Assembly (NCBI GenBank): GCA_951804945.1
Contig: OX638157.1
Location: forward strand, 30,938,001-31,002,000
Length of the DNA: 64,000 nucleotides
Direction of reading: 5' to 3'
Source of the DNA: Podarcis cretensis
Lineage: Eukaryota
Shown here piece by piece: positions 12,439 to 58,701 of this stretch (its first letter is position 1; every line of letters starts with the position of its first letter). The position numbers and the translations under genes are program-made. Below the pieces are notes generated by a model, which worked only from the letters and a program-made list of their open reading frames with translations, was not told where the DNA came from and ran no database searches.

Positions 12439-14537
12439 TTTTTTAATAATTTTTATTGCATTTTTCACAAAAAAGAACAAAAAAGCAAATTTTCACAAAC
12501 ATTACAAAAAGAAAAATTTTCACAAACATTACAAAAGAAAAGAAAACATAGACAAAAAAAAAAGAAGAGAAAAAAGGAGATTTTAACATATAAAAACAAA
12601 AAAAAATCCCTCACTTTCCAATTATAACCTTCAAAACCTTATTTTCCTTACTTCCACCCGCCTCCCGATCTTGTATTCTATTTAATAATTAGTTCAGCAA
12701 GCTCAATCTTTGTTCATTTTGATTCTTGATCCCTCCCTTTGTGCTCTTATTTAACTCAGTCACTAGAACCCCTTCTTTCCTTTTCAATGTCCTCAACATT
12801 CAAAGATTTTACAGTGTTTTTGTAGATAGACTTTAAACTTCTTCCAGTCCTCTTCCACCTGCTCTTCTCCTTGATCTCGAATTCTGCCGGTCATTTCAGC
12901 CAGTTCCATATAGTCTATTACTTGCATCTGCCATTCTTCCAGAGTGGGTAGATCTTGTGTCTTCCAATACTTTGCGATGAGTATTCTTGCTGCTGCTGTA
13001 GCGTACATAAAGAAAGTTCTATCCTTCTTTGGCACCAATTGGCCGACCATGCCCAGAAGAAAGGCCTCTGGTTTCTTCAAGAAGGTATACTTAAATACCT
13101 TTTTCAGTTCATTATAAATCATCTCCCAGAAAGCCTTGATCCTTGGGCACGTCCACCAAAGGTGAAAGAATGTCCCTTCAGTTTCTTTGCATTTCCAACA
13201 TTTATTATCGGGCAAATGGTAGATTTTTGCAAGTTTGACTGGGGTCATGTACCACCTATATATCATTTTCATAATATTCTCTCTTAAGGCATTACATGCC
13301 GTGAATTTCATACCGGTGGTCCACAACTGTTCCCAGTCAACAAACATAATGTTATGACCAACGTCTTGTGCCCATTTTATCATAGCAGATTTTACCGTTT
13401 CATCCTCAGTATTCCACTTCAACAGCAAGTTATACATTCTCGACAATATCTTAGCATTGGGTTCTAACAATTCTGTTTCCAACTTTGATTTTTCCACCTG
13501 GAAACCAATTTTCCTGTCCAAATGATAGGCCTCTCTTATTTGAAAATAATGTAACCAGTCTCGCACCTTATCCTTAAGTTTCTCATAACTTTGCAATTTT
13601 ATTTTATCTCCCTCCTGCTCCAGAATTTCCCAATATTTTGGCCAGTTAGATTCCATATTAAGCTTTTTTAAGGCCTTTGCTTCCATAGGTGAGAGCCACC
13701 TAGGGGTTTTATTTTCCAATAAATCTTTGTATTTCATCCAGACATTAAACAATGCTTTCCTGACAATATGGTTTTTAAATGTCTTGTACACTTTAGCCTT
13801 ACCGTACCACAAGTATGCATGCCACCCAAAAACGTTATCATATCCTTCCAAATCCAAAATATCCGTGTTTTCAAGAAGTAGCCAATCCTTCAACCAGCAA
13901 AAAGCTGCTGCTTCATAATATAACTTGAAGTCCGGCAGGGCAAACCCCCCTCTTTCCTTTGCATCAGTAAGAATTTTGTATTTTATTCTGGGCTTTTTGC
14001 CCTGCCAGACAAATCTAGAAATTTCTTTTTGCCACTTCTCAAAACAGTCCATTTTGTCAATGATTTGTAGCGTCTGAAACAAAAACAACATTCTTGGCAA
14101 TACATTCATTTTGATAACAGCAATTCTACCCAGTAAGGAAAGTTTCAAGTTTGTCCAAATTTCAAGATCTTTTTTCACTTCTGACCAACACTTCTCATAA
14201 TTATCTTTAAATAAATTTACATTCTTCGAAGTCAAGTTCACCCCTAGATATTTCACTTTTTTCACCAATATTAAACCTGTTTCTTCCTGAAACCTTTCCT
14301 TCTCTACTGCTGTCAAATTTTTCTCTAAAACCATAGTTTTTGATTTATTCAATTTAAAACCTGCCACCCGACCAAATTCTTGTATTATTTCCAGTGCTCT
14401 TTTAGAACTAGGGATTGGCTCCTGTAGCGTCAGTACTAGGTCATCTGCATAGGCTTTAAGTTTATAGTGTTTAACTCCGACCTGTATACCCTGAATCTGT
14501 TGGTCCCTTCTAATCATATTCAGCAAGACCTCTAGGA
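12439..14537 (-). mobile_element. 5'-truncated L1-clade LINE, young insertion
   Basis: 17-bp TSD CTAGTATGTGCATTTTT at 12422-12438 and 14538-14554. Poly(A) tail with AATAAA (minus strand, ~12452-12457). 3'UTR ~12445-12792. Target TTTT/GA fits the L1 endonuclease. Confidence 0.93.
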
Positions 14538-14637
14538 CTAGTATGTGCATTTTTGAACACATTGCTTGGTTGGAGAACAGCACTGCAAAATTTGGAGAAA
14601 TACGAATTTCAATAGATGGTTTTGTTTCTGTTCTCAT
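12793..14637 (-). CDS. L1 ORF2p C-terminal part (RT with YADD, thumb and CCHC domain); first ~31 codons come from flanking DNA
   Basis: 614-aa ORF with AYADDL, GFKLNKSKT, KYLGVNL, LSLLGRIAVIKMNVLP, GGFALPDFKLYY and CWKC-x8-H-x4-C. No endonuclease or RT N-terminal motifs. Confidence 0.9.
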   Translation of the reverse strand: MRTETKPSIEIRISPNFAVLFSNQAMCSKMHILVLEVLLNMIRRDQQIQGIQVGVKHYKLKAYADDLVLTLQEPIPSSKRALEIIQEFGRVAGFKLNKSKTMVLEKNLTAVEKERFQEETGLILVKKVKYLGVNLTSKNVNLFKDNYEKCWSEVKKDLEIWTNLKLSLLGRIAVIKMNVLPRMLFLFQTLQIIDKMDCFEKWQKEISRFVWQGKKPRIKYKILTDAKERGGFALPDFKLYYEAAAFCWLKDWLLLENTDILDLEGYDNVFGWHAYLWYGKAKVYKTFKNHIVRKALFNVWMKYKDLLENKTPRWLSPMEAKALKKLNMESNWPKYWEILEQEGDKIKLQSYEKLKDKVRDWLHYFQIREAYHLDRKIGFQVEKSKLETELLEPNAKILSRMYNLLLKWNTEDETVKSAMIKWAQDVGHNIMFVDWEQLWTTGMKFTACNALRENIMKMIYRWYMTPVKLAKIYHLPDNKCWKCKETEGTFFHLWWTCPRIKAFWEMIYNELKKVFKYTFLKKPEAFLLGMVGQLVPKKDRTFFMYATAAARILIAKYWKTQDLPTLEEWQMQVIDYMELAEMTGRIRDQGEEQVEEDWKKFKVYLQKHCKIFEC

Positions 14638-19526: not shown

Positions 19527-19714
19527 GTTGTTGTTTTTGTTTAGTTGTTTAGTCGTGTCGGACTCTTTGTGACCCCATGGACCAGAGCACGCTAGGCACT
19601 CCTGTCTTCCACTGCCTCCCGCAGCTTGGTCAAGCTCATGTTGGTAGCTTCGAGAACACTGTCCAACCATCTCGTCCCCTGTCGTCCCCTTCTCTTTGTG
19701 CTCTCAAACTTCCC
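19527..19714 (-). mobile_element. RTE-BovB LINE 3' fragment
   Basis: Encodes LGKFESTKRRGRQGTRWLDSVLEATNMSLTKLREAVEDRSA, then the BovB 3'UTR and (CAA)n tail. Candidate TSD CAGTGCT at 19520-19526 and 19715-19721. Confidence 0.9.
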
Positions 19715-19964
19715 CAGTGCTAGGTGAGTCTTTTTAGCTTGGATGGTCTTAGTGCTGAGCTGAAACATTTTTACCTCCAGCAGCTGCAAACAGCTCCCCA
19801 TATCCCACAAGTTTTGCATCCAGTCAGGGGGGAAGGGGAACATGCTCCCTTTACAAGATGCACCTTTATGTTGGGATGCACACTGCAGAGGAATGTCAAC
19901 CTGATTTAGGAATGTATTTGGATTGACATCTGGATACACATCCAAATGCAGGTGCCATTGCAGA

Positions 19965-22745: not shown

Positions 22746-24121
22746 CAATAAAGATACCACTCCTCCACAAAAAGGTTAATGACACAAGGAAATAACAGGG
22801 GTATCCTGGAAGATTATAGACAGCGGCTATGAGAGTTGAATTCATTTAAAGTAGGCTAGGTGTTCCCTTACCATCTCTTTTCCTATCTTGGGCTGCAGTT
22901 CCCTCCTTGCATCAGTTATTCTGTTATCATCAGGTTGTGCACTGCCTTTCTTTTGGGTGAAGACAGAGGCAAAGTAGGTGTCGAGTAGTTCCGCCTTTTC
23001 TCTTCTCATCCAATAGCATTTCTCTATCTTCTCAATATTAGGCTGAGAGACTATGAATGGCCCAAGGTCATTCAGAGAGCATCATGCTGGAGTAGGAATT
23101 TGAACCCTGGCTTCCTAGTTCCTAATCCAACAGCCTCACCACTACACTGGATCTTTAATAACACATACACAGAATAATTGTATTTTCTGAAGTATATCAT
23201 GGACATGTTTGTACAGCAGAAGGAGGGCATTTTAGTCAATATGGTACATTTTTGTTTTCTTGCAACTTCCAAAGTCAATTCTACATACAAGTTACCCATT
23301 CAGATCCCTGTTTAAGTACCTTTTTCAGTGAGAGTGAATAAGAGAAGAGCTATACTCTCAGACTGTTATGGTTTCTTCCTTTCACAAATTTAAATGAATT
23401 TCAGATTCCAGCTCAGTATCAAGCAAGTGTATGAGTGTGTTCCACATCTTCCTGAAACTGGCAAAATAAATTTGCTGTTGAAACTGATGAGAAAAAAAAA
23501 TGGGCCTGACAGACTGAATCTGGGCATCCTTTCCTGGCTTTCCCCTTGCCAAATCATGATCACTGAAAAAGCAATTCCTTCCCTCCTTGAATAAATGCCA
23601 TAGAGCTGTTCCAACAAGAACAGCCACATAGACCACAGAAGAGGAGGAGTGCTTATGTTCAATAGCTTAGAACTTGTGTGCCTTAGAAAACAATGCATGC
23701 TGAAGAAAATTAGCTGATAGAACAAATAACAATACTTCATGGAACTGGGGACATGGATATTCATCATGTGATAATTATAATATCCATTGATGGCTGGCAT
23801 GTGTGAATGTGCAATTACAAATAAAACAGCACCGACAGAATATTCACATCATCTCAGTTGTTTCCAGTGGGTCAGTTCATATATTTAGCTTCCAGTTCTC
23901 TATTTACAGTGATTAAATGTAGACAGTTCAAGTGATGTACATGCATGTGTGTAATACTCCTAGTCTACATCTGTTTGTGAGGAGCTTTCTACATTCTGCA
24001 AAAGAGGGTGGAAGAAAGAGTGAAAGTGAAATGATATGTATTTACCCTTGGAGATGTACAGATCACCTCCCGTAGGGAGGTGGTGTCCTGCCTGTATATG
24101 GAGCATGTGCTATTGGCCTTA

Positions 24122-33819: not shown

Positions 33820-34007
33820 TGATTTCCACATGGCTGGAATGTAGTCTGCTGTCACAACCATTGCTCCACCCAGTTCTGCCCTGCCCCTTCCTACCACTCA
33901 TCTGTGGTGCCTAGAACACCCACCACCACCCATGAGGGAGTGGGGTCATCCACCTGAAAAACTTTTCCCTCATGCAGTAGGCCCTTCTCTTGGTTTTAGT
34001 GTATCTA

Positions 34008-34342
34008 AAAGGTAAAGGGACTCCTGACCATTAGGTCCAGTCGTGGCCGACTCTGGGGTTGCGGCGCTCATCTTGCTTTACTGGCTGAGGGAGCCGGCGT
34101 ACAGCTTCCGGGTCATGTGGCCTGCATGACTAAGCCGCTTCTAGCGAACCAGAGTAGCACATGGAAACGCTGTTTACCTTCTCATTGGAGCAGTACCTAT
34201 TTATCTACTTGCACTTTGATGTGCTTTTGAACTGCTAGGTTGGCAGGAGCAGGGACCGAGCAACAGGAGCTCACCCCGTCACGGCAATTCGAACCACCGA
34301 CCTTCTGATCGGCAAGTCCTAGGCTCCCGCCACTTGCATCCC
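34008..34342 (-). mobile_element. Sauria SINE (lacertid POM-type)
   Basis: Reverse complement of the 39345 and 41803 copies, with ACCTTT tail. 13-bp TSD TTTAGTGTATCTA at 33995-34007 and 34343-34355. Confidence 0.92.
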
Positions 34343-39344: not shown

Positions 39345-39696
39345 GGGACGTGGGTGGCACTATGGTCTAAACCACAGAGCCTAGGGCTTGCCGATCAGAA
39401 GGTCAGCGGTTCGAATCCCCACGACAGGGTGAGCTCCCGTTGCTCGGTTCCTGCTCCTGCCAACCTAGCAGTTTGAAAGCACATCAAAGTGCAAGTAGAT
39501 AAATAGGTACCGCTCCAGCGGGAAGGTAAACGGCATTTCCATGCGCTGCTCTGGTTTGCCAGAAGCAGCTTAGTCATGCTGGCCACATGACCTGGAAGTT
39601 GTATGCCAGCTCCCTCGGCCAGTAAAGCAAGATGAGCGCTGCAACCCCAGAGTCGTCCGCAACTGGACCTAACGGTCAGGGGTCCCTTTACCTTTA
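39345..39696 (+). mobile_element. Sauria SINE, full length
   Basis: A box TGGCACTATGG, B box GGTTCGAATCC, 3' GGTCCCTTTACCTTTA. Confidence 0.93.
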
Positions 39697-41159: not shown

Positions 41160-42302
41160 ATCAAGTCCACTTACCACTTAGGGGGCAGGCGGTGTTGCAG
41201 CCTGGCGCAGCCGCCATAGTTCACTTCTGGTGCTGGCACTGAACGTTGGACCTAACAACGTGTATCAATGGCCAGGGCATCGGATTCAGGCCTGTCTGCA
41301 AATTGCCCAGTCGTGGGTGGCCCTGGAGACAGGCTCTCCTCAGAAGCAGGCCCAATGGAGCATTCAGGCTTCCCTTGGGTCCACTCCTTGGGCTTAAAAG
41401 CCAGAAAGCCCTGAGCCCTGCCTATGTTTTCAGCTTTAATTATGCTTGCTTGGCCTTGCTGTGGACTTCATTGGTCACCGTATTTGGGGCTGGGTAGAAA
41501 TTTATCTACCCAGAAAATTTGTTCCACTCCGGTGTTTTTGTCTACCTCACAGTGGTCATCACAACTCTGGTGGTTTAGGCATTGGGTAAGCCTTAAGTCT
41601 TGGCTGGAGGGGAGGTTGTGTCTCTGCCTGTCCCTCTGAGAAAAGGATATCCTACTAAAGAGATATGTGAGGAGTTGCTTTTGTCCTAGATGGGGGCTAG
41701 AGCCACAGCACTCATCAAGACAGCCATCCCGTGGGGTACTCCTACTTGATATAAGTCATAGGACTCTCCCGCTGTTGCATGGACCCTGGGTATACTTCCG
41801 GAGGGATGCGGGTGGGTTAAACCACAGAGCCTAGGACTTGCCGATCAGAAGGTCGGTGGTTCGAATCGCCGTGACGGGGTGAGCTCCCGTTGCTCAGTCC
41901 CTGCTCCTGCCAACCTAGCAGTTCGAAAGCACATCAAAGTGCAAGTAGATAAATAGGTACCACTCTGGCGGGAAGGTAAACGGCATTTCTGTGCGCTGCT
42001 CTGGTTCGCCAGAAGCGGCTTAGTCATGCTGGCCACATGACCCGGAAGCTGTACACCGGCTCCCTCGACCAATAAAGCGAGATGAGCGCTGCAACCCCAG
42101 AGTCCGTCACGACTGGACCTAATGGTCAAGGGTCCCTTTACCTTTTATACTTCCGGAAGGCGGGCTTGAAGTCAATGGCTGTATCCAATGCCTATTCCAA
42201 ACCTCTAATTGTGGCCTTATTTGATCCAAAAAGCACTGTTTTCTGCCTGGTTTATTGCTGTGAAAAATGGGGTGGTGGGTGGCGCAGTGCCTTAGCATAC
42301 AA
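41160..42302 (+). mobile_element. Structured ~0.8-kb element, copy C (DIRS/Ngaro-like, diverged), interrupted by a Sauria SINE
   Basis: Shares GTGTTGCAG, CCTTGCT, GGTAG.AATTT, TCACAACT, TAGGCATTGG...CCAATGCCTA and TTGTGGCC in the same order as copies A and B. Boundaries approximate. Confidence 0.6.
41803..42145 (+). mobile_element. Sauria SINE
   Basis: Near-identical to 39345 but with a small A-box deletion. 12-bp TSD TATACTTCCGGA at 41791-41802 and 42146-42157. Confidence 0.93.
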
Positions 42303-49245: not shown

Positions 49246-50503
49246 TAAAGCTATGGTTTTCCCAGTAGAGATGTATGGAAGTGAGAGCTGGACCATAAAG
49301 AAGGCTGATAGCCGAAGAATTCATGCTTTTGAATTATGGTGCTGGAGGAGACTCTTGAGAGTCCCATGGACTGCAAGAAGATCAAACCTCTCCATTCTGA
49401 AGGAAACCAGCCCTGAGTGCTCACTGGAAGGACAGATCCTGAATCTGAGACTCCAATACTTTGTCGACCTTATGAGAAGAGAAGACTCCCTGGAAAAGAC
49501 CCTGATGTTGGGAAAGATGGAGGGCACAAGGAGAAGGGGACAAAGCGTGTTCTCCCTAACAGAGAGCACGTGTTGCAGTTGGGGGAACAGGCCACCCTAC
49601 CATGACTAGGCAAATTTGGTCAGCAACCCTAGCCTTTAAGGGGTTAATTGGGTTGCTGGGGAATTTTGATTGTTGCCAATTCGGAGGAGGGGTCAGAGGC
49701 TTTAAATATAGGGGCCAGACGTGGGGACGTCCTCTTGGCCGTTTTGCACCGGATCACCCGCCCCCCCTCCCTTTTATAGGGTGGTTCTTTGGTTACTTGA
49801 CCTTGCTATGCCTGTCATGGGGTTGTCCGCCTTTGAGCGGGGGCCTGGTAGGAATTTTGCCACTTGGCTGATTGGCTGGTGCCATTTGGTTTTTGCCTAC
49901 TACGTAGCAAATCGTCACAACTTGTAAGGTTGGCGGTTAGGCATTGGTTAATTGGTGCTTGGAGGGGTAAGTGCCTATCCCTCCAAATGATGTGGAAAGG
50001 GAATTCCGTTAAAGGAATCCAGGGGCTTGCCATTCTTTTCGTCCTTGTCCGTGGAGCCAGACTTGGGCCGTGCAAGCCCCACCGGAACATGAGGGTGAGA
50101 GGTGAGGGTCTGTTTCCCAGCTTCATTTCTCACCCAATACTTGTTTCCCGCGCTGGCTTCCGGTGGTGTCCGGAAGGGCCAGCTCTGTCCTTGAGGGCCA
50201 GGACAGATAGTCATAACCAATGCCTAAGCAACCACTCACATTTTTTGTATTTGAATAAAGTTGTGGCCAAAAATTATGCCAAAAACCTTAAACAAAAATT
50301 GATGTGTGAAGTGTGAATTATTTTGGGGGGTGGCACTGTGGGACTCAACACGCAACAGAGGACGAGATGGTTGGATAGTGTTCTCGAAGCTACCAGCATG
50401 AGTTTGACTAAACTGGGAGGCAGTGGAAGACAGGAGTGGCTGGTGTGCTCTGGTCCATGGGGTCACGAAGAGTCGGACATGACTAAAGACTAAACAACAA
50501 CAA
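49246..50503 (+). mobile_element. RTE-BovB LINE 3' fragment interrupted by a 0.8-kb insertion
   Basis: Encodes MVFPVEMYGSESWTIKKADSRRIHAFELWCWRRLLRVPW...LEKTLMLGKMEGTRRRG. Resumes at 50356 with QRTRWLDSVLEA and ends in a (CAA)n tail. Confidence 0.92.
49544..50355 (+). mobile_element. Structured ~0.8-kb element, copy A (probable DIRS/Ngaro-like terminal-repeat unit)
   Basis: Boundaries are fixed by the interrupted BovB. Short inverted ends GCGTGTT / AACACGC, TATA-like TAAATATA, AATAAAGTTGTGGCC. Homologous to 57944-58701. The family assignment is inference. Confidence 0.7.
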
Positions 50504-50869
50504 ACTACTTTTCAGTCGCATGTTCCTGCAGAAGAAGCTGCAGAGGAGTCACCCTCAGCCTCTGAGGATGATGGGAGCTGATTAGAGATTTTTATGATCA
50601 CATGGGAATCTTCTTGATCTGAGTCCTTCTCAATCCAGCCAAAGATCCTGAGACAAGAGGGCTGCCAGAGGCAGTCCTGTGACCAGTGACATAAGCATGC
50701 TGAGAACAGTTCCTTGGAACATGCCTGGAGCTCCTTTCCCTAACCAATCACCCTACAGTCCTCATACATCTGAGGCCAGGAGAAAGTGCTAATACATCAA
50801 AGAGCATGACTTCCAGATGGGCTCAATCTTCAGAAAATATCACATTGTGTTGGTTTGCTGACTTTCTGC

Positions 50870-51316
50870 ACTACTGTGGCACCCCCTCTGTACAAAGAGC
50901 ATGATAACCCGCTGAACCAGAATTATTCATGTAGCTGCTTCCCCAGCAATCTGAGACTGTGTCTGCAGGAAGCTAACTTCTGCTCTCTCTTCATGTCTCT
51001 CCTGGTTCTTGTCGCAGCAAGATGGGGAGACACCCTGGTTTCTTCACCATCCAGATTCCTCTCTGCTTCTTGGCCTTCCTCATCTCCTGCTTCTGATTCT
51101 GATTCTGGACAGCTCTCTGCCATAGACTCTCCCTGCTACCTAAACCCTGTTACCTCTTCAGCTTCTGACACCTTCTCTTCTCAGTCTTCTCTCTCTTTTC
51201 CCTCTGATCACTCATTACTGTCCCACCACCAATCCCCAGGCTCTGAGCTTTCTTCTCTTGGGGTTTCCTCAGCCGGTTTTTCCCACCATGCCTCTGCGTT
51301 CAACCAGTCCTTGACA
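50870..51316 (-). mobile_element. LTR-like repeat (Gypsy-type), purine-rich
   Basis: Minus strand begins TGTCAAGGACTGG and has a GA-rich body. Left boundary uncertain. A more degraded similar tract lies at ~50520-50860 (+). Confidence 0.45.
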
Positions 51317-51451
51317 CTAGGCAAAAAATGAAGCTAAAGAATAATAATCAAAATTAAGTAGAGCCTGTTTCTGGATGTTTGCTTTCCAATGTTTGGCATT
51401 TCTACACAATTGTCCATTGCTTTTCCGTTCTCTCAAAAAGAAGGATGTGTC

Positions 51452-51467
51452 TTCCACTAGATGGCAC
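51452..51467 (+). promoter_or_regulatory. Candidate CTCF binding site
   Basis: TTCCACTAGATGGCAC, a strong CTCF core match. Confidence 0.6.
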
Positions 51468-52099
51468 TTGTGTTTACCTTTTGGAGCGTCAGCACTGCAT
51501 GCTGGCACTTTTTGTTCATCCTGCCATTCAGACTTTAACTAATGTGTTTCCCCAATGTCACTCCAATGAACAGTAGCTGGAAAGGGTGTGACAAATGTGA
51601 TTGTAATACAGGAGTACAGTACTGTCAACATCCTAGATCACTTGCCTGACAATATGGAAGAAGAAACCTCACACCAATAAGCCATACCGCAATCAACTAA
51701 ACACAACCAACCAAGCTCGGGAGCCCCTAACCTCTTGCAACATCAATGAAAATAAATAAATACACAAAGGACCTACTCATGTGATGCTGACACAACACCT
51801 CCTACACTAAGAATAGGCAATAGAATAAAAAAACCCATATCCCCATCTCTCTCCCCCAACTGCAATATGTCTACACCAAAAATGTCTCCCACCAGATGTA
51901 AACAAACTGTGAAAAAGACTATAAACTGAAAGCGGAGACAATAAATGTACCATTTCCTGTTTATCTGTTTGCTTTGTAACACAAATCCACCCAATAAAAA
52001 GTAATAATAATTTAAAAAATGTTGAAGAAGAAACACCATTGAATTAATCCTTTTTTCTTGCACTGGCAAGTGTAGGAGAGATGTGTGCTTCATATACTT

Positions 52100-52440
52100 T
52101 TATTTTATTTTGTATTTATTGCATTTATATCCTCTGCCCTTCTTCCTGAGCAGCAAACAAGCAAACATTTTAAAAAGTAAAACAAAGCAAAAGCATTTTT
52201 TAAAAAACACTTAGAAGTCTAAAAAAACAACTTCAGTTAAAAACATTATTTCATTCAGTGATCTTAGGGTTGACAAGATGAGTATTCTCCAGTCATCAAA
52301 TGCCTGGGTAAACAGGAATGCTTCCAAACCTCTCTTGAAAGTTAGTAATGATGCGGACAGGTGTACCTCACCTAGGGATGGCATTCCACAATCAGGGAAC
52401 CACCACGGAAAAGGCCCTGTCATGGGGCAGCCCTTGGTGT
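52100..52440 (-). mobile_element. L2 LINE 3' fragment
   Basis: Reverse strand resembles RAFSVVVP.LWNA...LLTFKRGLEAFLFTQAF. Confidence 0.7.
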
Positions 52441-52878
52441 CAGCACCACCAACAAGGCTTCAGCTGTTGATCATCACATTTAAGATGTAATCACTGGCCA
52501 GTTTTTGCTTGAATGATGTACAAGATGCAGTCAAGAATCATGACAGAATCGGGTAGTGGTGGCACCACACAAAATTTAGGGGGCTGCATGAAAGTATCAT
52601 TTGACCCACTAGTTGTTCATGGTTTTCAGAAATTCTGGGCCAATGTTTAGAAACAACGTCTTTAGCTGAACACTTTGAAGCCAAAATCTGGGACGCCATC
52701 TTAACGCATGCCATATTCCAGTTTTATATCATGAGCGCAAAGAGACCATTTTCACCCTGGGGGCATGGCACTCAAAAATGGGCATTTGGGGGGCACCATG
52801 AAAGAATACGACCCCCCCCAGTGCATTTTTCACTGCAAAATCACAGCAACCCAAATGGCCACCGTTCTCTGGCAGGGA

Positions 52879-52896
52879 AATAATAATAATAATAAT

Positions 52897-52953
<57 letters not shown>

Positions 52954-53340
52954 ACCCTCCCCAGCCAAAGCCGGGCTCAGAACGGCTAACATCAAATGTA
53001 TAACACATTAACATAAAATCAGACAATCAATTAAAATACATCCTCAAATCAGATCAGGATCAGAATAAAATCGAATCAGATGGCAACCCGCAGATTAGGG
53101 TTGGGGACCTTAAATGCTCACCAGGCCCAACTGTTTGCGCTGAACTTATATGGGCCTGGGAGAAAAATTGGGAGGCCACTTTCATGCAAGTTCTTATGAA
53201 AGGGGAGAGGGAGTCAGACTGAACCCCGACCAAAGGCCTGGCAGAACAGCTCTGTCTTGCAGACCCTGCGGAAAGATGTCAAGTCCCACAGGGCCCTGGT
53301 CTCTTGTGACAGAGCGTTCCACCAGATTGGAGCCACAGCC
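52879..53340 (-). mobile_element. L2 LINE 3' fragment whose tail is an (AAT)n(AT)n microsatellite (52879-52950)
   Basis: CAGAACAGCTCTGTCTTGCAG...AGAGCGTTCCACCAG is the reverse of the L2 ORF2 end. CCCACCCTCCCCAGCC...GGGCTCAGAACGGCT is the 3' stem-loop region. Confidence 0.7.
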
Positions 53341-53461
53341 TTTGCAGTTGCATAGCTGCGCCATAATACTAGGATGATGAGAGGTGGTATTCGTTTTACT
53401 GCTTATGCTGGTCATTGGGATGGTGCTATTCTAAATAAAAGGAGGTTCACTTGAAGTAAGT

Positions 53462-53463
<2 letters not shown>

Positions 53464-53507
<44 letters not shown>
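53464..53507. repeat. (GT)n microsatellite
   Basis: Perfect run. Confidence 0.95.
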
Positions 53508-53508
<1 letters not shown>

Positions 53509-54874
53509 CATTTCTCCAAAAAGAGACAGTCTACCTTCCTGGTCACTCAGCATTTGTTCCAACTATTCTCCTCCTTTCTAGCTTACAATGTGGGCCTATG
53601 AAGCTTGTGCCAAGGAGAAGTGGGATATTGAACACCAATGGTTCTTAGTCACCGGACTTGAATACTCCTCTCCTCTGCCATTCTGAAGAGCCCATCCTGC
53701 CTCTGTGACCACAGAGCCAAAGGCAGAATCAGTCATAAAGGAAAATGTACTGGCACGAGTATCCCTCCCCTGCTTTGCTGGACAACAATGAGCCAGAATA
53801 ATTAAGTTTCTTGTGGATTTCACCCTAAACCATAATTTGGCTCTGGATCATTCAAAGTTGGTTTTCTATCCAGAATTAAATTTCAGGACTCTAATGAAAT
53901 TCCAGCTAAAGTGAGTTTCACTTGGTCTCACATGTGGCTCCAAGTAACTCCTGCAGTTCTAATTATGAAAGGAAGGGAGAGCTATGGGCTGTATCATAAC
54001 TATTCACTAGCTAATTTTTAAAAAGCAGTAGATGCATTATTTAAAAATGATCTTACAGTATACAGTCTCTTCTTTTATATGAACATTAAAATCCTTGCCA
54101 ATGTTTATGTAATGCTCCAAGGCCGTTTCTTCCAGAGAGTATAAACAAACATCTGGAACAGCTGCACACCCCATGTGTTTATTTATTGTACATGAAGAAG
54201 GTTAAGAACTGCCAATTAATTTTTGTCTTGAAACTTTGCATAGACTAATTTCCTTGGGATTAAAGCCATAATTCAGCCAGGGATGAAGATGTTTGGCTGA
54301 GCTGTAACAGTTGAGAAACCCAACTGATATCTCTAATTTGTTTATTTTAAAGTACTCACACTGATTCGAATCAGGATAGTCTAGTGCAGATGTGGGGAAC
54401 CTTTCACCCTCCAGATGTTGCTGAACATCAGCCCCAGTAAGCACCAACATCATTTAGGATGCATGGCAAAAAGCTGGCATAAGATTAATTGGTGTAAGTA
54501 GCATTGTGCAAGAGGAAAGCAGAAGAGTGTTTTTACCAGTATTGTGAAATGGAAGCATTGCAAATGTGAATCCATCCTCAGCCTTCCTCAAATGTACACA
54601 TCCACTCTAACTCTTCTTGCCCACCTTACCATTCCTGAACAAACTACATACTTGATTCTGAAAAATGCAGGGTTAAGCATTGAGGAGAAATGTGAGGCAG
54701 AGCACACAGTCAAGCTTAGCCTCATACATTTTCTGCAACCACATGTAAAGCCCTTAACATCAAAGATCTATGCTAGTTGACCCTATACACAACAGCTTTT
54801 CTTGGTAGACTGACCCTATGCAATCTAGAAAGGTACACAAAAGTGATAACGGTTTCCACATATTACAATAAGAA

Positions 54875-54990
54875 TACAGATGTTGTTAGACTTCGGGCTC
54901 CCATCATCCTTGACCATTGCCCATTATGGCTGGTGCTGATGGGAGCTGGAGTCTAACAACCTCCGAGGGTCACAGATTTCCCATTCCTTC
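54875..54990. mobile_element. Short hAT-like palindromic MITE fragment
   Basis: GTTGTTAGACTTCGGGCTCCCATCA...TGATGGGAGCTGGAGTCTAACAAC inverted arms. Related pieces at ~1190-1260, 19185-19280, 20445-20490 and 54385-54450. Confidence 0.6.
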
Positions 54991-55825
54991 TAGAGTGCTA
55001 TATGAACCAGCTTACAGTGTGCATGGAAAGAGTTGTTGCACACCAGTTTAGAAGAACAGAATGCATGCTGACCCACTGAATACTCACCCACCCCCCTCCA
55101 GATACTGGATGTTTTCTGTTCTAGCTAAGGTCTATTAACATAATCAGCAGCTCCTTTATGAATTTCTTTATTTTGTCCCTTTTTTGTAAACTAATACTCT
55201 TGCTTTGCAGCAGCAAGAAACCAATTTTTGTAGCATAACTACAGAGCAGCAGTACGCCATGCATAATGCACAGCAGCTGTTATCATTTTGTATATGAAGA
55301 TTTTCCAAGACCTCAGTGCTTATGAAATACAAACTGCACTCTGTTCAATTATTTGCCATGATTTGTATGTGAAAGAGCAGCTTCAACCCCTCGGGGCTTT
55401 TGTTTGAGCATCTGCAATGAGTTTTTAATGTTGCCTCTTCCTTGTTTTCTGTAATAGAATGCTTCTGGGTGCTCCCTGCGCTCCCTACTCCAACCCAAAG
55501 GAATCAAACACCACAACATTTACCAGTTACCTGCCAGAAAAGCAATGATTAAAAAAACCTATTCATATGCACATTACTTCACTTTTACTATCTTGAGAAT
55601 ATATGTGAAATGGAGGCCCCTATATAGGTCTGTGAAAAGAATACGATGTGCCCCTTGGCTGGGGATAGCATCAGAACACCCTCTCTATTAGAGACTGCTT
55701 CCAAGATGGCACCTTGGGATGAAACTTCAGTAGGGTGGGACCATGAACCATGCCCGGAAGTACTATTTCTAAGATCTGCCCAGTTTCTCTTTTACAGAAG
55801 ACTCCAAACTCCTCTGCAGGAGCAG

Positions 55826-55867
55826 CAGTGGTTGCTAAACAGTGGTTGCTAAGCAGTGGTTGCTAAA
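55826..55867. repeat. 14-bp tandem repeat x3 (CAGTGGTTGCTAAR)
   Basis: Direct read. Confidence 0.9.
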
Positions 55868-56429
55868 TCAATTGAAGATGAGTTGAAAATTGCCTCCCCA
55901 ATTCAACCAATCCATTGGTGTTCCCAGGTGGCAAAATGGGACCACCATCTCAGTGGTTTTCAGCATGGCAGCAAGAAATGTTACAAATAGTTTAGGGGAA
56001 AGAATTTAAACTGGGTAAAAACAATGTCACCTACTGTTACAGTGGTGGATCTTCCTTATTTGCCTGCTTGCCACCACATGTTTTCTCTTCCCAGAATCCC
56101 CCTTGAATTATGCAAGCACATGCTGGCATGGGAAGCAGTGAAGCCCCAAAAGAGGAAAACTCGGTTTTACAGCTCCTCAATGACCTTTTCCAAGTTAGCT
56201 TAAGTACCGTGAATTCCTTGAAATGTGGACCACCACTGGAATGTAAGTCCTCTTAGACCTTTATGTGGAACTTCTCCATGTTGACATTGATTTGAAGTAC
56301 AGTCCACTGTATTTTGGCAGGTCTGGAATGGATACTTTTGAGTTAATAACGTTTAAACTTTTATCCTGAAACCCCAAGCAGCTTCACAGCAGGGCCGTTG
56401 ATGATGTTACCCTACAGCCCACATAAATT

Positions 56430-56622
56430 GGGGGGGCATAGCTCAGTGTTGGAGCATCTGGTTTGCATGCCAAAGGTTCTAGTTTCAATCCTCAACATCC
56501 CTAGGTAGGGCTGCGAGAGATCAGTTTCTGAATTCCTGAAGAGTTGTTGCCAGTCAATATATAGACAATACTAGACAGACCAATGGTCTTACTCAGTATA
56601 ATGCAGTTTGCTACGATCCTAA
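56430..56622 (+). mobile_element. tRNA-derived SINE with CR1-like tail
   Basis: GGGGCATAGCTCAGTGTTGGAGCA head and GACCAATGGTCTTACTCAGTATAATGCAG tail. Confidence 0.72.
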
Positions 56623-57199
56623 ATCCAATAGACAATGAAAATCCTATGTGGAAGAGAGTATCATATGCATGTCTTTTTAAATAAGAGAGTGCCTATAGAT
56701 GGGTGTACTCTTATTTAACCTGAGAATATTCTTTGGTGTCTCTGTGGTAAGCCTAATCTCCCATCAAGCTAAACCAAGCCTGTTTAATGTATGGGGCTTC
56801 AGTGAGAATCATTCAAATAAAAGCCAAGTACTTCAGCTTAACTGGGCTATGGATCAGGCTGTCACATGGTAGCAGTTGTACAGCAGTATAAAGCTTGCAC
56901 TTTCAAAGAAATGGCACTCAAATTATATGAGCTCTGGATTTATTTCATCCTGATTAAGTGTTAAATATACTCTCCTGGCTCCAATTTAAACCTCATTTGA
57001 TCAAATTGGCTCATTTCCTAGCACTTGATAGGAAAAGCTGTAATACGATTATGTTGATTGGTCTTAAATTAAGATGAATGAAGAATCTTTTAAAAATTAT
57101 GTAGGGTTTGATAAGGCTAGAAATAGCATCTACCTGAAGAGAAGGCACCTTGCATACTTTCTGCATTTAAAGAAATGTGAAATAGAATTCACTTGATTT

Positions 57200-57745
57200 T
57201 TTTATTAAGAACTTCTATTCCACCCAATTAACTCGAGGCAGTATACAACATAACGCAAATAAGGGCAACAACAATCTAATATTCATTAAAAACTCTAAAA
57301 GCTAAGATCAGAGTGTTGTAAAATGCCAGCCATTTCAAAAGAGCACCTAAGGCAATAAAAGAGGCCACTCCAATTCAAAATAATTCCTAGCCTTCTGAGG
57401 GCCTGCTGAAATAAAAAGAATTTCACAGTTTTCTGAAAAAGTCGGGAGGGAGTTAGCCTGAGAAGGGAATTCCTCTGAAAGGGTGCCACCACTGATCAGG
57501 TTCCCTGCTTCTCTCCACTATCCAAACAGTAGATAGAGAAGATAGGTGGTCTATATGGGGGAAGATGCTTCCAGAGATATACTGGAGACAGGCTACTGAG
57601 ACTTTCAAATACTGTATTAAAACAACCATTTTGAATTGTTCCTTGAAATGACCTGGGAACCACTGGGCATCTTTGCCTGCATTTTGAGCCAATGGGAGTT
57701 TTCTGGATAGTTTCCAATGGCAGCGTGTATTACAGTTTGGGGAAT
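57200..57745 (-). mobile_element. Old L2 LINE fragment
   Basis: Reverse strand resembles QW.P...EQFKMVVL...LQYI...KTVKFFLFQQAL, a degraded L2 ORF2 end. Confidence 0.55.
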
Positions 57746-57761
57746 ACTAAAGCCAGGCCAT

Positions 57762-57929
57762 GAGGGACGCGGGTGGCACTGTGGGTTAAACCACAGAGTC
57801 TAGGGCTTGCCGATCAGAAGGTTGGCGGTTCGAATCCCTGCTATGGTGTGAGCTCCCGTTGCTCGGTCCCTGCTCCTGCCAACCTAGCAGTTCGAAAGCA
57901 CGTTAATGGTCAGGGGTCCCTTTACCTTT
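57762..57929 (+). mobile_element. Sauria SINE with a large internal deletion
   Basis: Intact A and B boxes. GTTCGAAAGCACGT is fused to TAATGGTCAGGGGTCCCTTTACCTTT. 14-bp TSD TAAAGCCAGGCCAT at 57748-57761 and 57930-57943. Confidence 0.92.
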
Positions 57930-57943
57930 TAAAGCCAGGCCAT

Positions 57944-58701
57944 ATTGTGTCTTCCCTCAAAGAGGACACGTGTTGCGGTGCGACCTGACAACCAACACCC
58001 TGTGTTGTGGATGGGTATGATTGGATAGCCACAACACCATATTGGTAGGTCCCTCGATGCAGGGTTTAATCAGGCCAATGGGATCGAGGGACCTATATAT
58101 GCCTATGCATGTGTCCCCAAGCTTCCTCTTTGGGCCAGTGCATTGGAACACCCGCCCACCTCTCCCTATATTTAGGGCTTGCGCTTGACCTTGCTATGCT
58201 GTCATGTGTCATCTGTCATTGGAACAGGGGCACGGCAGGAATTTCCCCCACTTGGCTGATTGGCTGTTGCCATTTGGGTTTCATCTGCTGCATAGCAAAT
58301 CGTCACAACTTGTAAGGTTGTGGATAGGCTCTGGTTCAGGTGATAGGGATGGGAGAACGCTCTTGCCACCCCTATGAGAAGGGTATTCCGTTAAAGGAAT
58401 CCAGGGACTCAATGGTTTGGTCAACCCTGAGAGGGGTTGTGCCCATGCCTGAGTCCAGGGGGACATCTGAGTGGTGGACTAGCCTGACCATGGCTTTCCG
58501 TTGTTCCAGGTGTTCACCCTAGGCTGACCTATGCTGGTGTCCTGGGTCAGCGCTACCTGCCACGGTGCAGGGAACTAGTCGAACCAGAGACTATGCAACC
58601 ACTCACTTGATGTAATCAATAAATTCTGCCCAAAACCAAACCAAAATTTGAGTCTTGTCTGAATTTATTTAAGGGGGAGGTTAAAAGGTCTGAACATGCA
58701 A
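57944..58701 (+). mobile_element. Structured ~0.76-kb element, copy B (probable DIRS/Ngaro-like)
   Basis: Shares CTTGACCTTGCTATGC, CCACTTGGCTGATTGGCTG, TAGCAAATCGTCACAACTTGTAAGGTTG, ATTCCGTTAAAGGAATCCAGGG and GCAACCACTCAC with copy A. Ends GAACATGCAA. Confidence 0.7.

Follow-up and report, generated by a model that had tools for sequence, protein, structure and literature searches.

Tyrosine-recombinase retroelements (the DIRS order) are the least understood order of retrotransposons. Their Ngaro/PAT-type members carry split direct repeats, and DIRS1-like members have inverted repeats together with an internal complementary region (PMC3266345, PMC9210276, PMC7192593). DIRS1-like integration yields a 3-bp junction identical in the target, with no target duplication (PMC3266345). 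Throughout the order, the primer for reverse transcription and the basis of template recognition are not known (PMC7192593); a small 3' hairpin proposed as primer in DIRS-1 (PMC7192593) was the only related structure found in the literature searched, which held no large conserved RNA fold for the order. The present analysis concerns three related units, A, B and C, in a 64,000-nucleotide stretch of the Podarcis cretensis genome (assembly GCA_951804945.1, contig OX638157.1, positions 30,938,001 to 31,002,000 of the forward strand; hereafter the window, to which all coordinates refer). The explanation favored here, to which somewhat better than an even chance is given, is that they are long terminal repeat (LTR)-like units of a Ngaro/PAT-type family, devoid of open reading frames (ORFs), with a cis-acting RNA structure in their transcribed part that has been under selection.

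The Rex-responsive elements of human T-lymphotropic virus and bovine leukemia virus (HTLV/BLV) and the Rec-responsive elements of human endogenous retrovirus K (HERV-K) are long stem-loops. The 35S RNA leader of the plant pararetrovirus cauliflower mosaic virus (CaMV) forms a long hairpin before the ORFs, which serves ribosome shunting, and Penelope-like elements and retrozymes have hammerhead-bearing repeats. Like the CaMV leader, the fold described below comprises several hundred nucleotides closed by a long-range helix, with a structure kept despite sequence divergence, but it occurs in another host kingdom and another element class, and no ORF follows it. With the repeats of Penelope-like elements and retrozymes the units share the property of being non-coding retroelement repeats with a functional, here predicted, RNA. 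In contrast to them, neither A nor B matches a hammerhead, hepatitis delta virus-like or any other ribozyme model at E values up to 5, and a ribozyme, one of the functions put forward in a sequence-only reading of this DNA, is thus rejected. Among retroviral R/U5 leaders, that of HIV-1 (human immunodeficiency virus type 1) harbors the TAR and poly(A) hairpins (PMC2645353), and in foamy virus the structure of the LTR controls poly(A) use (PMC3694450). The present fold is similarly a multi-hairpin structure in a terminal repeat, between start site and poly(A) signal, that is kept more than its sequence and whose long-range helix ends ~25 nt before AAUAAA. It differs from these leaders in that the units have no sequence or Rfam similarity to them, no integrase-type ends or duplications, and no known regulatory protein partner.

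A two-domain fold in copies A and B

Copy A (49544-50355), delimited by comparison with reads, contigs and other BovB copies, is an ORF-less LTR-like unit inside the tail of a BovB-type long interspersed nuclear element (LINE). Copies B (57944-58701) and C (41165-42302) were delimited by alignment and nhmmer, and all three lie on the + strand. Homology between A and B covers their entire length (nhmmer E 6e-53), with 64% identity in a sequence-only alignment, distributed as 52% in the U3-like segment, 81% in domain 1, 58% in domain 2 and 59% in a further segment. C is a distant, decayed relative (E 4e-9 with A). Its inclusion in a MAFFT alignment caused misalignment owing to a short interspersed nuclear element (SINE) that it contains; the SINE was removed from C before comparison, and A and C then align from end to end. 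The sequence-only reading took the three copies for non-coding mobile insertions belonging to a single family, and the analysis supports this.

Independent minimum-energy folding of the + strand RNA of A and of B gave one and the same architecture, in which a linker hairpin separates two closed domains, 1 and 2. The fold, with its two self-closed domains, takes up ~430 nt downstream of the second TATA-like box and upstream of AATAAA. All helix strings that had been named beforehand, i.e., the 5' hairpin, the domain stems, the inner stems, the 14-nt arms, ATTCC-GTTAAA-GGAAT and the TGGTGT loop, were recovered at the positions given for them.

Domain 1 (49798-49917 in A, 58186-58305 in B, from minimum-energy fold and alignment) is ~120 nt long and mostly invariant. 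Its outer closure, TGAC/GTCA and TTGCTATG/CGTAGCAA in A, encloses a variable hairpin and then a three-stem arm with an ATTGG end loop, the reverse of the CCAAT box. The stems of A are TGAC/GTCA, TTGCTATG/CGTAGCAA, the variable hairpin, TGGTAGG/CCTACTA, GCCA/TGGT and TGGC/GCCA, and those of B are TGAC/GTCA, TTGCTATGC/GCATAGCAA, GGCAGG/TCTGCT, CCCA/TGGG and TGGC/GCCA. The linker hairpin CAACTT-GTA-AGGTTG (49918-49932 in A) carries no covariation information, because it is identical in the two copies.

Domain 2 is longer (~290 nt) and far more diverged in sequence. In A it spans 49935-50229, with closing arms at 49937-49950 and 50214-50227, and in B 58321-58600, with closing arms at 58324-58337 and 58581-58594. 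Six hairpins follow one another in the same order in both copies, at 49959-49986, 50000-50020, 50022-50080, 50084-50147, 50152-50183 and 50184-50207 in A, and at 58341-58377, 58382-58402, 58405-58456, 58457-58520, 58521-58554 and 58556-58571 in B. Two loops are fixed, GTTAAA (on the 50000-50020 hairpin of A) and TGGTGT (on that at 50152-50183). The long-range helix formed by the closing arms had been described as perfect over 14 bp in A, with four compensated pairs in B, and this is what was seen: 14 of 14 pairs form in A and 13 of 14 in B, where both partners differ from A in four pairs and a single G/A mismatch occurs. All four substitutions in the 5' arm are matched by complementary ones in the 3' arm, conserved blocks anchor both outer sides, and the probability of such compensation was estimated at roughly p 6e-5 to 3e-4.

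The fold is conserved between lineages beyond chance. Taken singly, the sequences fold more stably than their dinucleotide shuffles (z = -4.6 in copy A, -3.45 in copy B). On the sequence-only A/B alignment, the RNAalifold consensus energy is -106.5 kcal/mol, compared with -64.4 +/- 5.5 kcal/mol for column shuffles (z = -7.6, with none of 200 shuffles as good), and a z-score of -5.5 was obtained on the MAFFT default alignment. Circularity was avoided by reading the minimum-energy structure of one copy alone in the other copy, with a control in which the 3' partner was slid by 1-3 columns. With the structure of A read in B, 19 of 25 double-changed pairs are kept (76%) versus 37 of 88 in the slid control (42%; Fisher p 0.0025). 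Conversely, the structure of B read in A keeps 21 of 28 (75%), versus 55 of 111 when slid (50%). Domain 2 contributes 19 pairs changed on both sides, as opposed to 0-3 in slid controls. Covariation is weak in domain 1 (four pairs, a count reached by 39 of 500 shuffles), because this domain is mostly invariant.

The earlier proposal that a compensated structure is common to all three copies thus holds for A and B, and for C in part. A covariance model derived solely from A and B places domain 1 of C (41451-41558) at the expected position with 26.2 bits (E 3e-4), compared with 18.3 bits for a sequence-only model, so that structure adds ~8 bits to its detection. The long-range helix of C, established by string check and alignment, pairs TAGGCATTGG (41576-41585) with CCAATGCCTA (42185-42194) and thus spans 41576-42194; its arms are of the A type and, without the SINE, ~250 nt apart. 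Compensated changes are found in stems P1b (A-T to G-C) and P1d (G-C to A-T). C supports only stems P1a, P1b and P1d and the long-range helix, and its inner hairpins do not agree with those of A and B. No copies beyond these three were detected in the 64-kb window by nhmmer and similarity search. A structure-only match to domain 1 at 23930-24083 (+; 17.3 bits, E 0.03), in which the stems are fully different and the GUA loop is kept, was considered as a fourth copy; having neither support from the sequence model nor a domain 2 or poly(A) signal downstream, it was treated as chance.

Ends and insertion sites

The insertion occurred without an integrase-type duplication. A splits the BovB-type LINE tail into 49253-49543 and 50356-50505, and hundreds of public reads and contigs of other BovB copies cross its site uninterrupted (GGGGAC-G-ACAGAGG), skipping 49542-50354. 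The BovB copy at 19531-19716 (-) is also continuous across the site that is occupied in A. The empty site reads GGGGAC-G/A-ACAGAGG, with a single CAA/CGA, and because other copies read through it without interruption, A is a clean insertion that adds at most one shared CAA. No target duplication of 4-6 bp is found at A, and at B and C there is none of at least 4 bp that fits the aligned ends. Both RNA runs contain BovB reads in great abundance and in both directions.

The trinucleotide CAA precedes A (49541-49543) and terminates it (50353-50355), and the same holds for C (41162-41164 and 42300-42302). B is preceded by CAT (57941-57943) and terminated by CAA (58699-58701), a match at two of three positions. 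The aligned units start with AGCG (A), ATTG (B) and GTCC (C) and end with GCAA, GCAA and ACAA, respectively, and TG...CA terminal dinucleotides are absent from the aligned ends of all three. By string check, a 5' terminal hairpin is formed by GTGTTCTC/GAGAGCAC in A (49547-49569; 8 bp including one G.T pair) and by GTGTCTTC/GAGGACAC in B (57947-57969), so that the partner of the 5' end in both copies is the segment following its own hairpin loop. A motif search located the conserved GTGTTGC, which comes after this hairpin in A (49570-49576) and B (57970-57976), also in C (41192-41198); its distance from the unit start is 26, 26 and 27 nt in A, B and C, respectively. Joining the 3' end to the 5' end, as would happen in a circle or where internal repeats meet, allows the terminal GCAA to pair with the TTGC after the 5' hairpin and would place the ends side by side (50343-50355 with 49544-49584 in A, 58686-58701 with 57944-57990 in B); the joined junction of A reads AACACGC-AAA-GCGTGTT. 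An end-to-end panhandle or circle-junction splint was rejected, its energy being no better than that of dinucleotide shuffles (z = -0.9, +0.65 and -0.96).

Because the same trinucleotide stands at both ends of A and C, no duplication is present and the empty site has a single CAA/CGA, the units bear the signature of the DIRS order. The family is most likely one of tyrosine-recombinase retroelements, in agreement with the sequence-only reading. The Ngaro/PAT type, with its split direct repeats, would be the best fit, an assignment based on the insertion signature. As in other elements of the order, a promoter and a poly(A) signal appear to be located in the terminal parts. Unlike them, A, B and C contain no gag, reverse transcriptase (RT)/ribonuclease H or recombinase ORF and no split direct repeats, and inverted terminal repeats are not apparent. 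The complementarity of their ends does not exceed that of shuffled controls. On this reading they would be 'solo' (A+B) products of recombination between repeats, or else non-autonomous derivatives; in full-length elements, the boundary between the A and B repeat parts is predicted to fall in the linker, near 49918-49934 of copy A. Each unit begins with a promoter part that varies between copies, followed by a transcribed middle, then a poly(A) signal and finally a short end. In such a layout the fold would fill the R-like transcribed part of the repeat.

The layout taken alone would also suit solo LTRs of the usual kind, derived from an integrase-type element (an LTR retrotransposon such as Gypsy, Copia or BEL, or an endogenous retrovirus) with a long structured R region. 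The U3-R-U5-like arrangement, TATA-like boxes, GC box, AATAAA and GT-rich downstream stretch are all in keeping with that origin, and retroviruses offer well-known examples of structured R/U5 regions (PMC2645353, PMC3694450, PMC2664473). The absence of TG...CA ends, the sharing of at most 3 bp without a 4-6 bp duplication at the site of A, and the lack of a target duplication in each of the three copies render it quite unlikely. A resemblance to SINE-like, LINE-dependent retroposons is not apparent either, as the units continue for ~95 nt after AATAAA and have neither a 3' A-tail nor a duplication.

The three units have the same orientation, and their starts, taken as 41160, 49544 and 57944, are separated by 8384 and 8400 bp. 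Such an arrangement could also arise from a host non-coding RNA gene through duplication or pseudogene formation, with no mobile element involved. However, A cleanly splits a BovB tail, the intervals have no colinear similarity, Rfam returns nothing and the family is highly repeated, which makes a host gene highly improbable as their source. Tandem duplication as the cause of the equal 8.4-kb spacing was likewise rejected for want of colinear similarity between the intervals, and the near-equal spacing of C, A and B is probably a coincidence.

Transcription and predicted role of the fold

In A, the promoter-like part (49701-49779), delineated by its motifs, consists of TTTAAATA (49701-49708), the GC box CCCGCCC (49757-49763) and TTTTATAG (49772-49779), and might act as a promoter, judging from these motifs. 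The GC box and the TATA-like box are ~25-45 nt upstream of domain 1, with ~25 nt between the last box and the domain. AATAAA is found ~25 nt downstream of domain 2, at 50254-50259 in A, where a GT-rich stretch and a ~95-nt U5-like end come next, and at 58618-58623 in B. Each copy has an inverted repeat of its own just upstream of the TATA-like box (49611-49668 in A; 58046-58095 in B, a perfect 13 bp; 41290-41334 in C), and the sequences of these repeats are unrelated between copies.

Selection on a + strand RNA, which the sequence-only reading had proposed from G-T pairs, receives modest support, and the + strand is modestly favored. In both A and B, the + strand fold is ~20 kcal/mol more stable than that of the minus strand, and among changed pairs G.U outnumbers A.C by 24:11 (p 0.04). 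RNA reads of the family are mostly first-mate-minus, which corresponds to sense RNA in usual stranded libraries.

The family appears to be large and highly repeated. Summed contig depth amounts to ~300-2,700 over the promoter-like 5' part, 15,000-93,000 over domain 1 and the linker, and 60,000-70,000 after the 3' arm; it reaches 1-3.6 million over the flanking BovB tail. This pattern indicates that many subfamilies share the core and that the 5' part is lineage-specific, with which the segment identities between A and B agree. At three positions where A has G.T or C/A (49978, 50059 and 50101), the family-majority letters in public reads give Watson-Crick pairs, and in one contig 50104 G>A is accompanied by C>T at the partner position 50124. 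RNA depth is low (5-25), comes mostly from relatives of 90-95% identity, and falls after ~50224-50267. In the coordinates of A, transcripts are predicted to begin near 49798-49805 and to terminate near 50270-50290.

Several results weigh against a selected RNA structure in Ngaro/PAT-type units. The covariation statistics rest on two copies, A and B, and partly on C, as only three copies could be aligned, and the sequences used to derive the consensus structures also served to test them. Each comparison yields 19-26 one-sided changes that break pairs; this is the decay expected after insertion, yet equally what a weaker constraint would give. In C the overall pairing test is null, with 5 of 10 pairs kept and an inner domain 2 that does not fit. 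The helix 49992-49995/50148-50151 of the minimum-energy fold of A is contradicted by the family-majority letters and was dropped. Folding of the minus strand gives a comparable z-score (-6.1), as is to be expected given that mirrored helices must fold as well. No pile-ups of transcript starts or ends were found in the public RNA reads. As regards the family assignment, the left trinucleotide of B is CAT instead of CAA, no recombinase or RT is present in or adjoining the units within the window, and A, B and C have no internal split direct repeats of the A1...B1-A2-B2 arrangement, nor any apparent inverted repeats.

The similar z-score of the minus strand is also what would be seen if the helices were a DNA-level or mutational by-product, in the form of palindromic factor-binding sites (CCAAT/ATTGG, GC-box region) or of quasi-palindromes corrected from a template. 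Short hairpins can be homogenized by intra-strand template switching. The ATTGG motifs of domain 1, where conservation resides mainly in sequence and covariation is weak, are compatible with this origin. It is nevertheless regarded as unlikely, as it accounts poorly for four compensated pairs in arms ~250 nt apart, for 19 compensated pairs in a domain of 58% identity, or for the preponderance of G.U pairs relative to A.C pairs on the + strand.

Alternatively, the units might be complete non-autonomous replicons, possibly small circles mobilized in trans by a recombinase element, with the structured RNA as the whole genome in a loosely retrozyme-like manner. Units of ~0.8 kb without ORF or internal repeats, the high summed contig depth over the core regions, and the pairing of the 3' GCAA with the TTGC after the 5' hairpin in a circle-junction fold all point in this direction. 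However, a transcript running from the TATA-like box to the poly(A) signal would miss both unit ends, no hammerhead or other ribozyme is present, the end complementarity is not above that of shuffles, and no circle-indicating joints have been reported in public reads. Such replicons are therefore considered very unlikely.

If the units are Ngaro/PAT-type repeats with a selected RNA, selection would have acted on the sense RNA of the element in its active lineages. Since a local helix of its own closes each domain, the domain would fold in a solo unit as well as in a full-length element. By analogy with the retroviral R/U5 leaders (PMC2645353, PMC3694450), the most likely role predicted for the fold is that of a replication cis signal, acting in reverse transcription, strand transfer or packaging, which might mediate template recognition by RT or Gag or help strand transfer between repeats. 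Control of export or polyadenylation would be the next likeliest role. The fact that primer and template choice are unsettled for DIRS-1 (PMC7192593) leaves room for a signal of this kind, and a large compensated fold kept across diverged lineages represents a concrete candidate for it. A further-reaching and rather doubtful proposal is that the fold represents the first cis-acting RNA domain to be found conserved in tyrosine-recombinase retroelements, and that it is recognized by RT or Gag or guides priming and repeat-to-repeat strand transfers. If true, this would also explain how ORF-less units are mobilized in trans. Should covariation not extend genome-wide, the units would be ordinary decaying repeats with chance stem matches.

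Similarity searches and neighboring features

The sequence-only reading had not recognized a described RNA family, and the Rfam scan agrees with it: Rfam 15 gave no match at gathering thresholds over the whole window. With single copies as queries, A had three matches at E 0.9-2, far below gathering, and B had none. A small nuclear RNA or a telomerase RNA was likewise rejected, as neither has Rfam support. No ORFs with Pfam matches are found in the units. The 68-aa ORFs of A (49721-49927) and B (58109-58315) have the same TAA end (...ANRHNL), but all differences in their conserved end are non-synonymous and located in stems, and neither has a Pfam match; a coding function was therefore rejected. 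Exact patterns of two invariant blocks had no match in the metagenome and viral contigs scanned. A protein-database search with a spurious 150-aa ORF over A gave a single match, P0001 (ENA, 621-bp contig), a 131-aa predicted 'protein' that is 42% identical to that ORF over domain 2 of A. To judge from this similarity, P0001 presumably comes from a further family member, present in a public assembly.

The SINE inside domain 2 of C (41806-42145, +) is derived from a transfer RNA (tRNA) and is flanked by a 15-bp target duplication (41791-41805 and 42146-42160). It is one of four copies that are ~90% alike, the others being at 34006-34326 (-), 39345-39695 (+) and 57764-57931 (+), the last of which is truncated and ends 12 bp upstream of B. 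SINEs of this kind, together with the BovB LINE tails, suit a squamate genome. A tRNA primer site in the TGGTGT loop was considered but not retained; no tRNA genes were found in the window. Finally, a 614-aa ORF at 12793-14637 (-) has a partial RVT_1 match (E 9e-7) just below the Pfam cut-off and is probably a LINE remnant.

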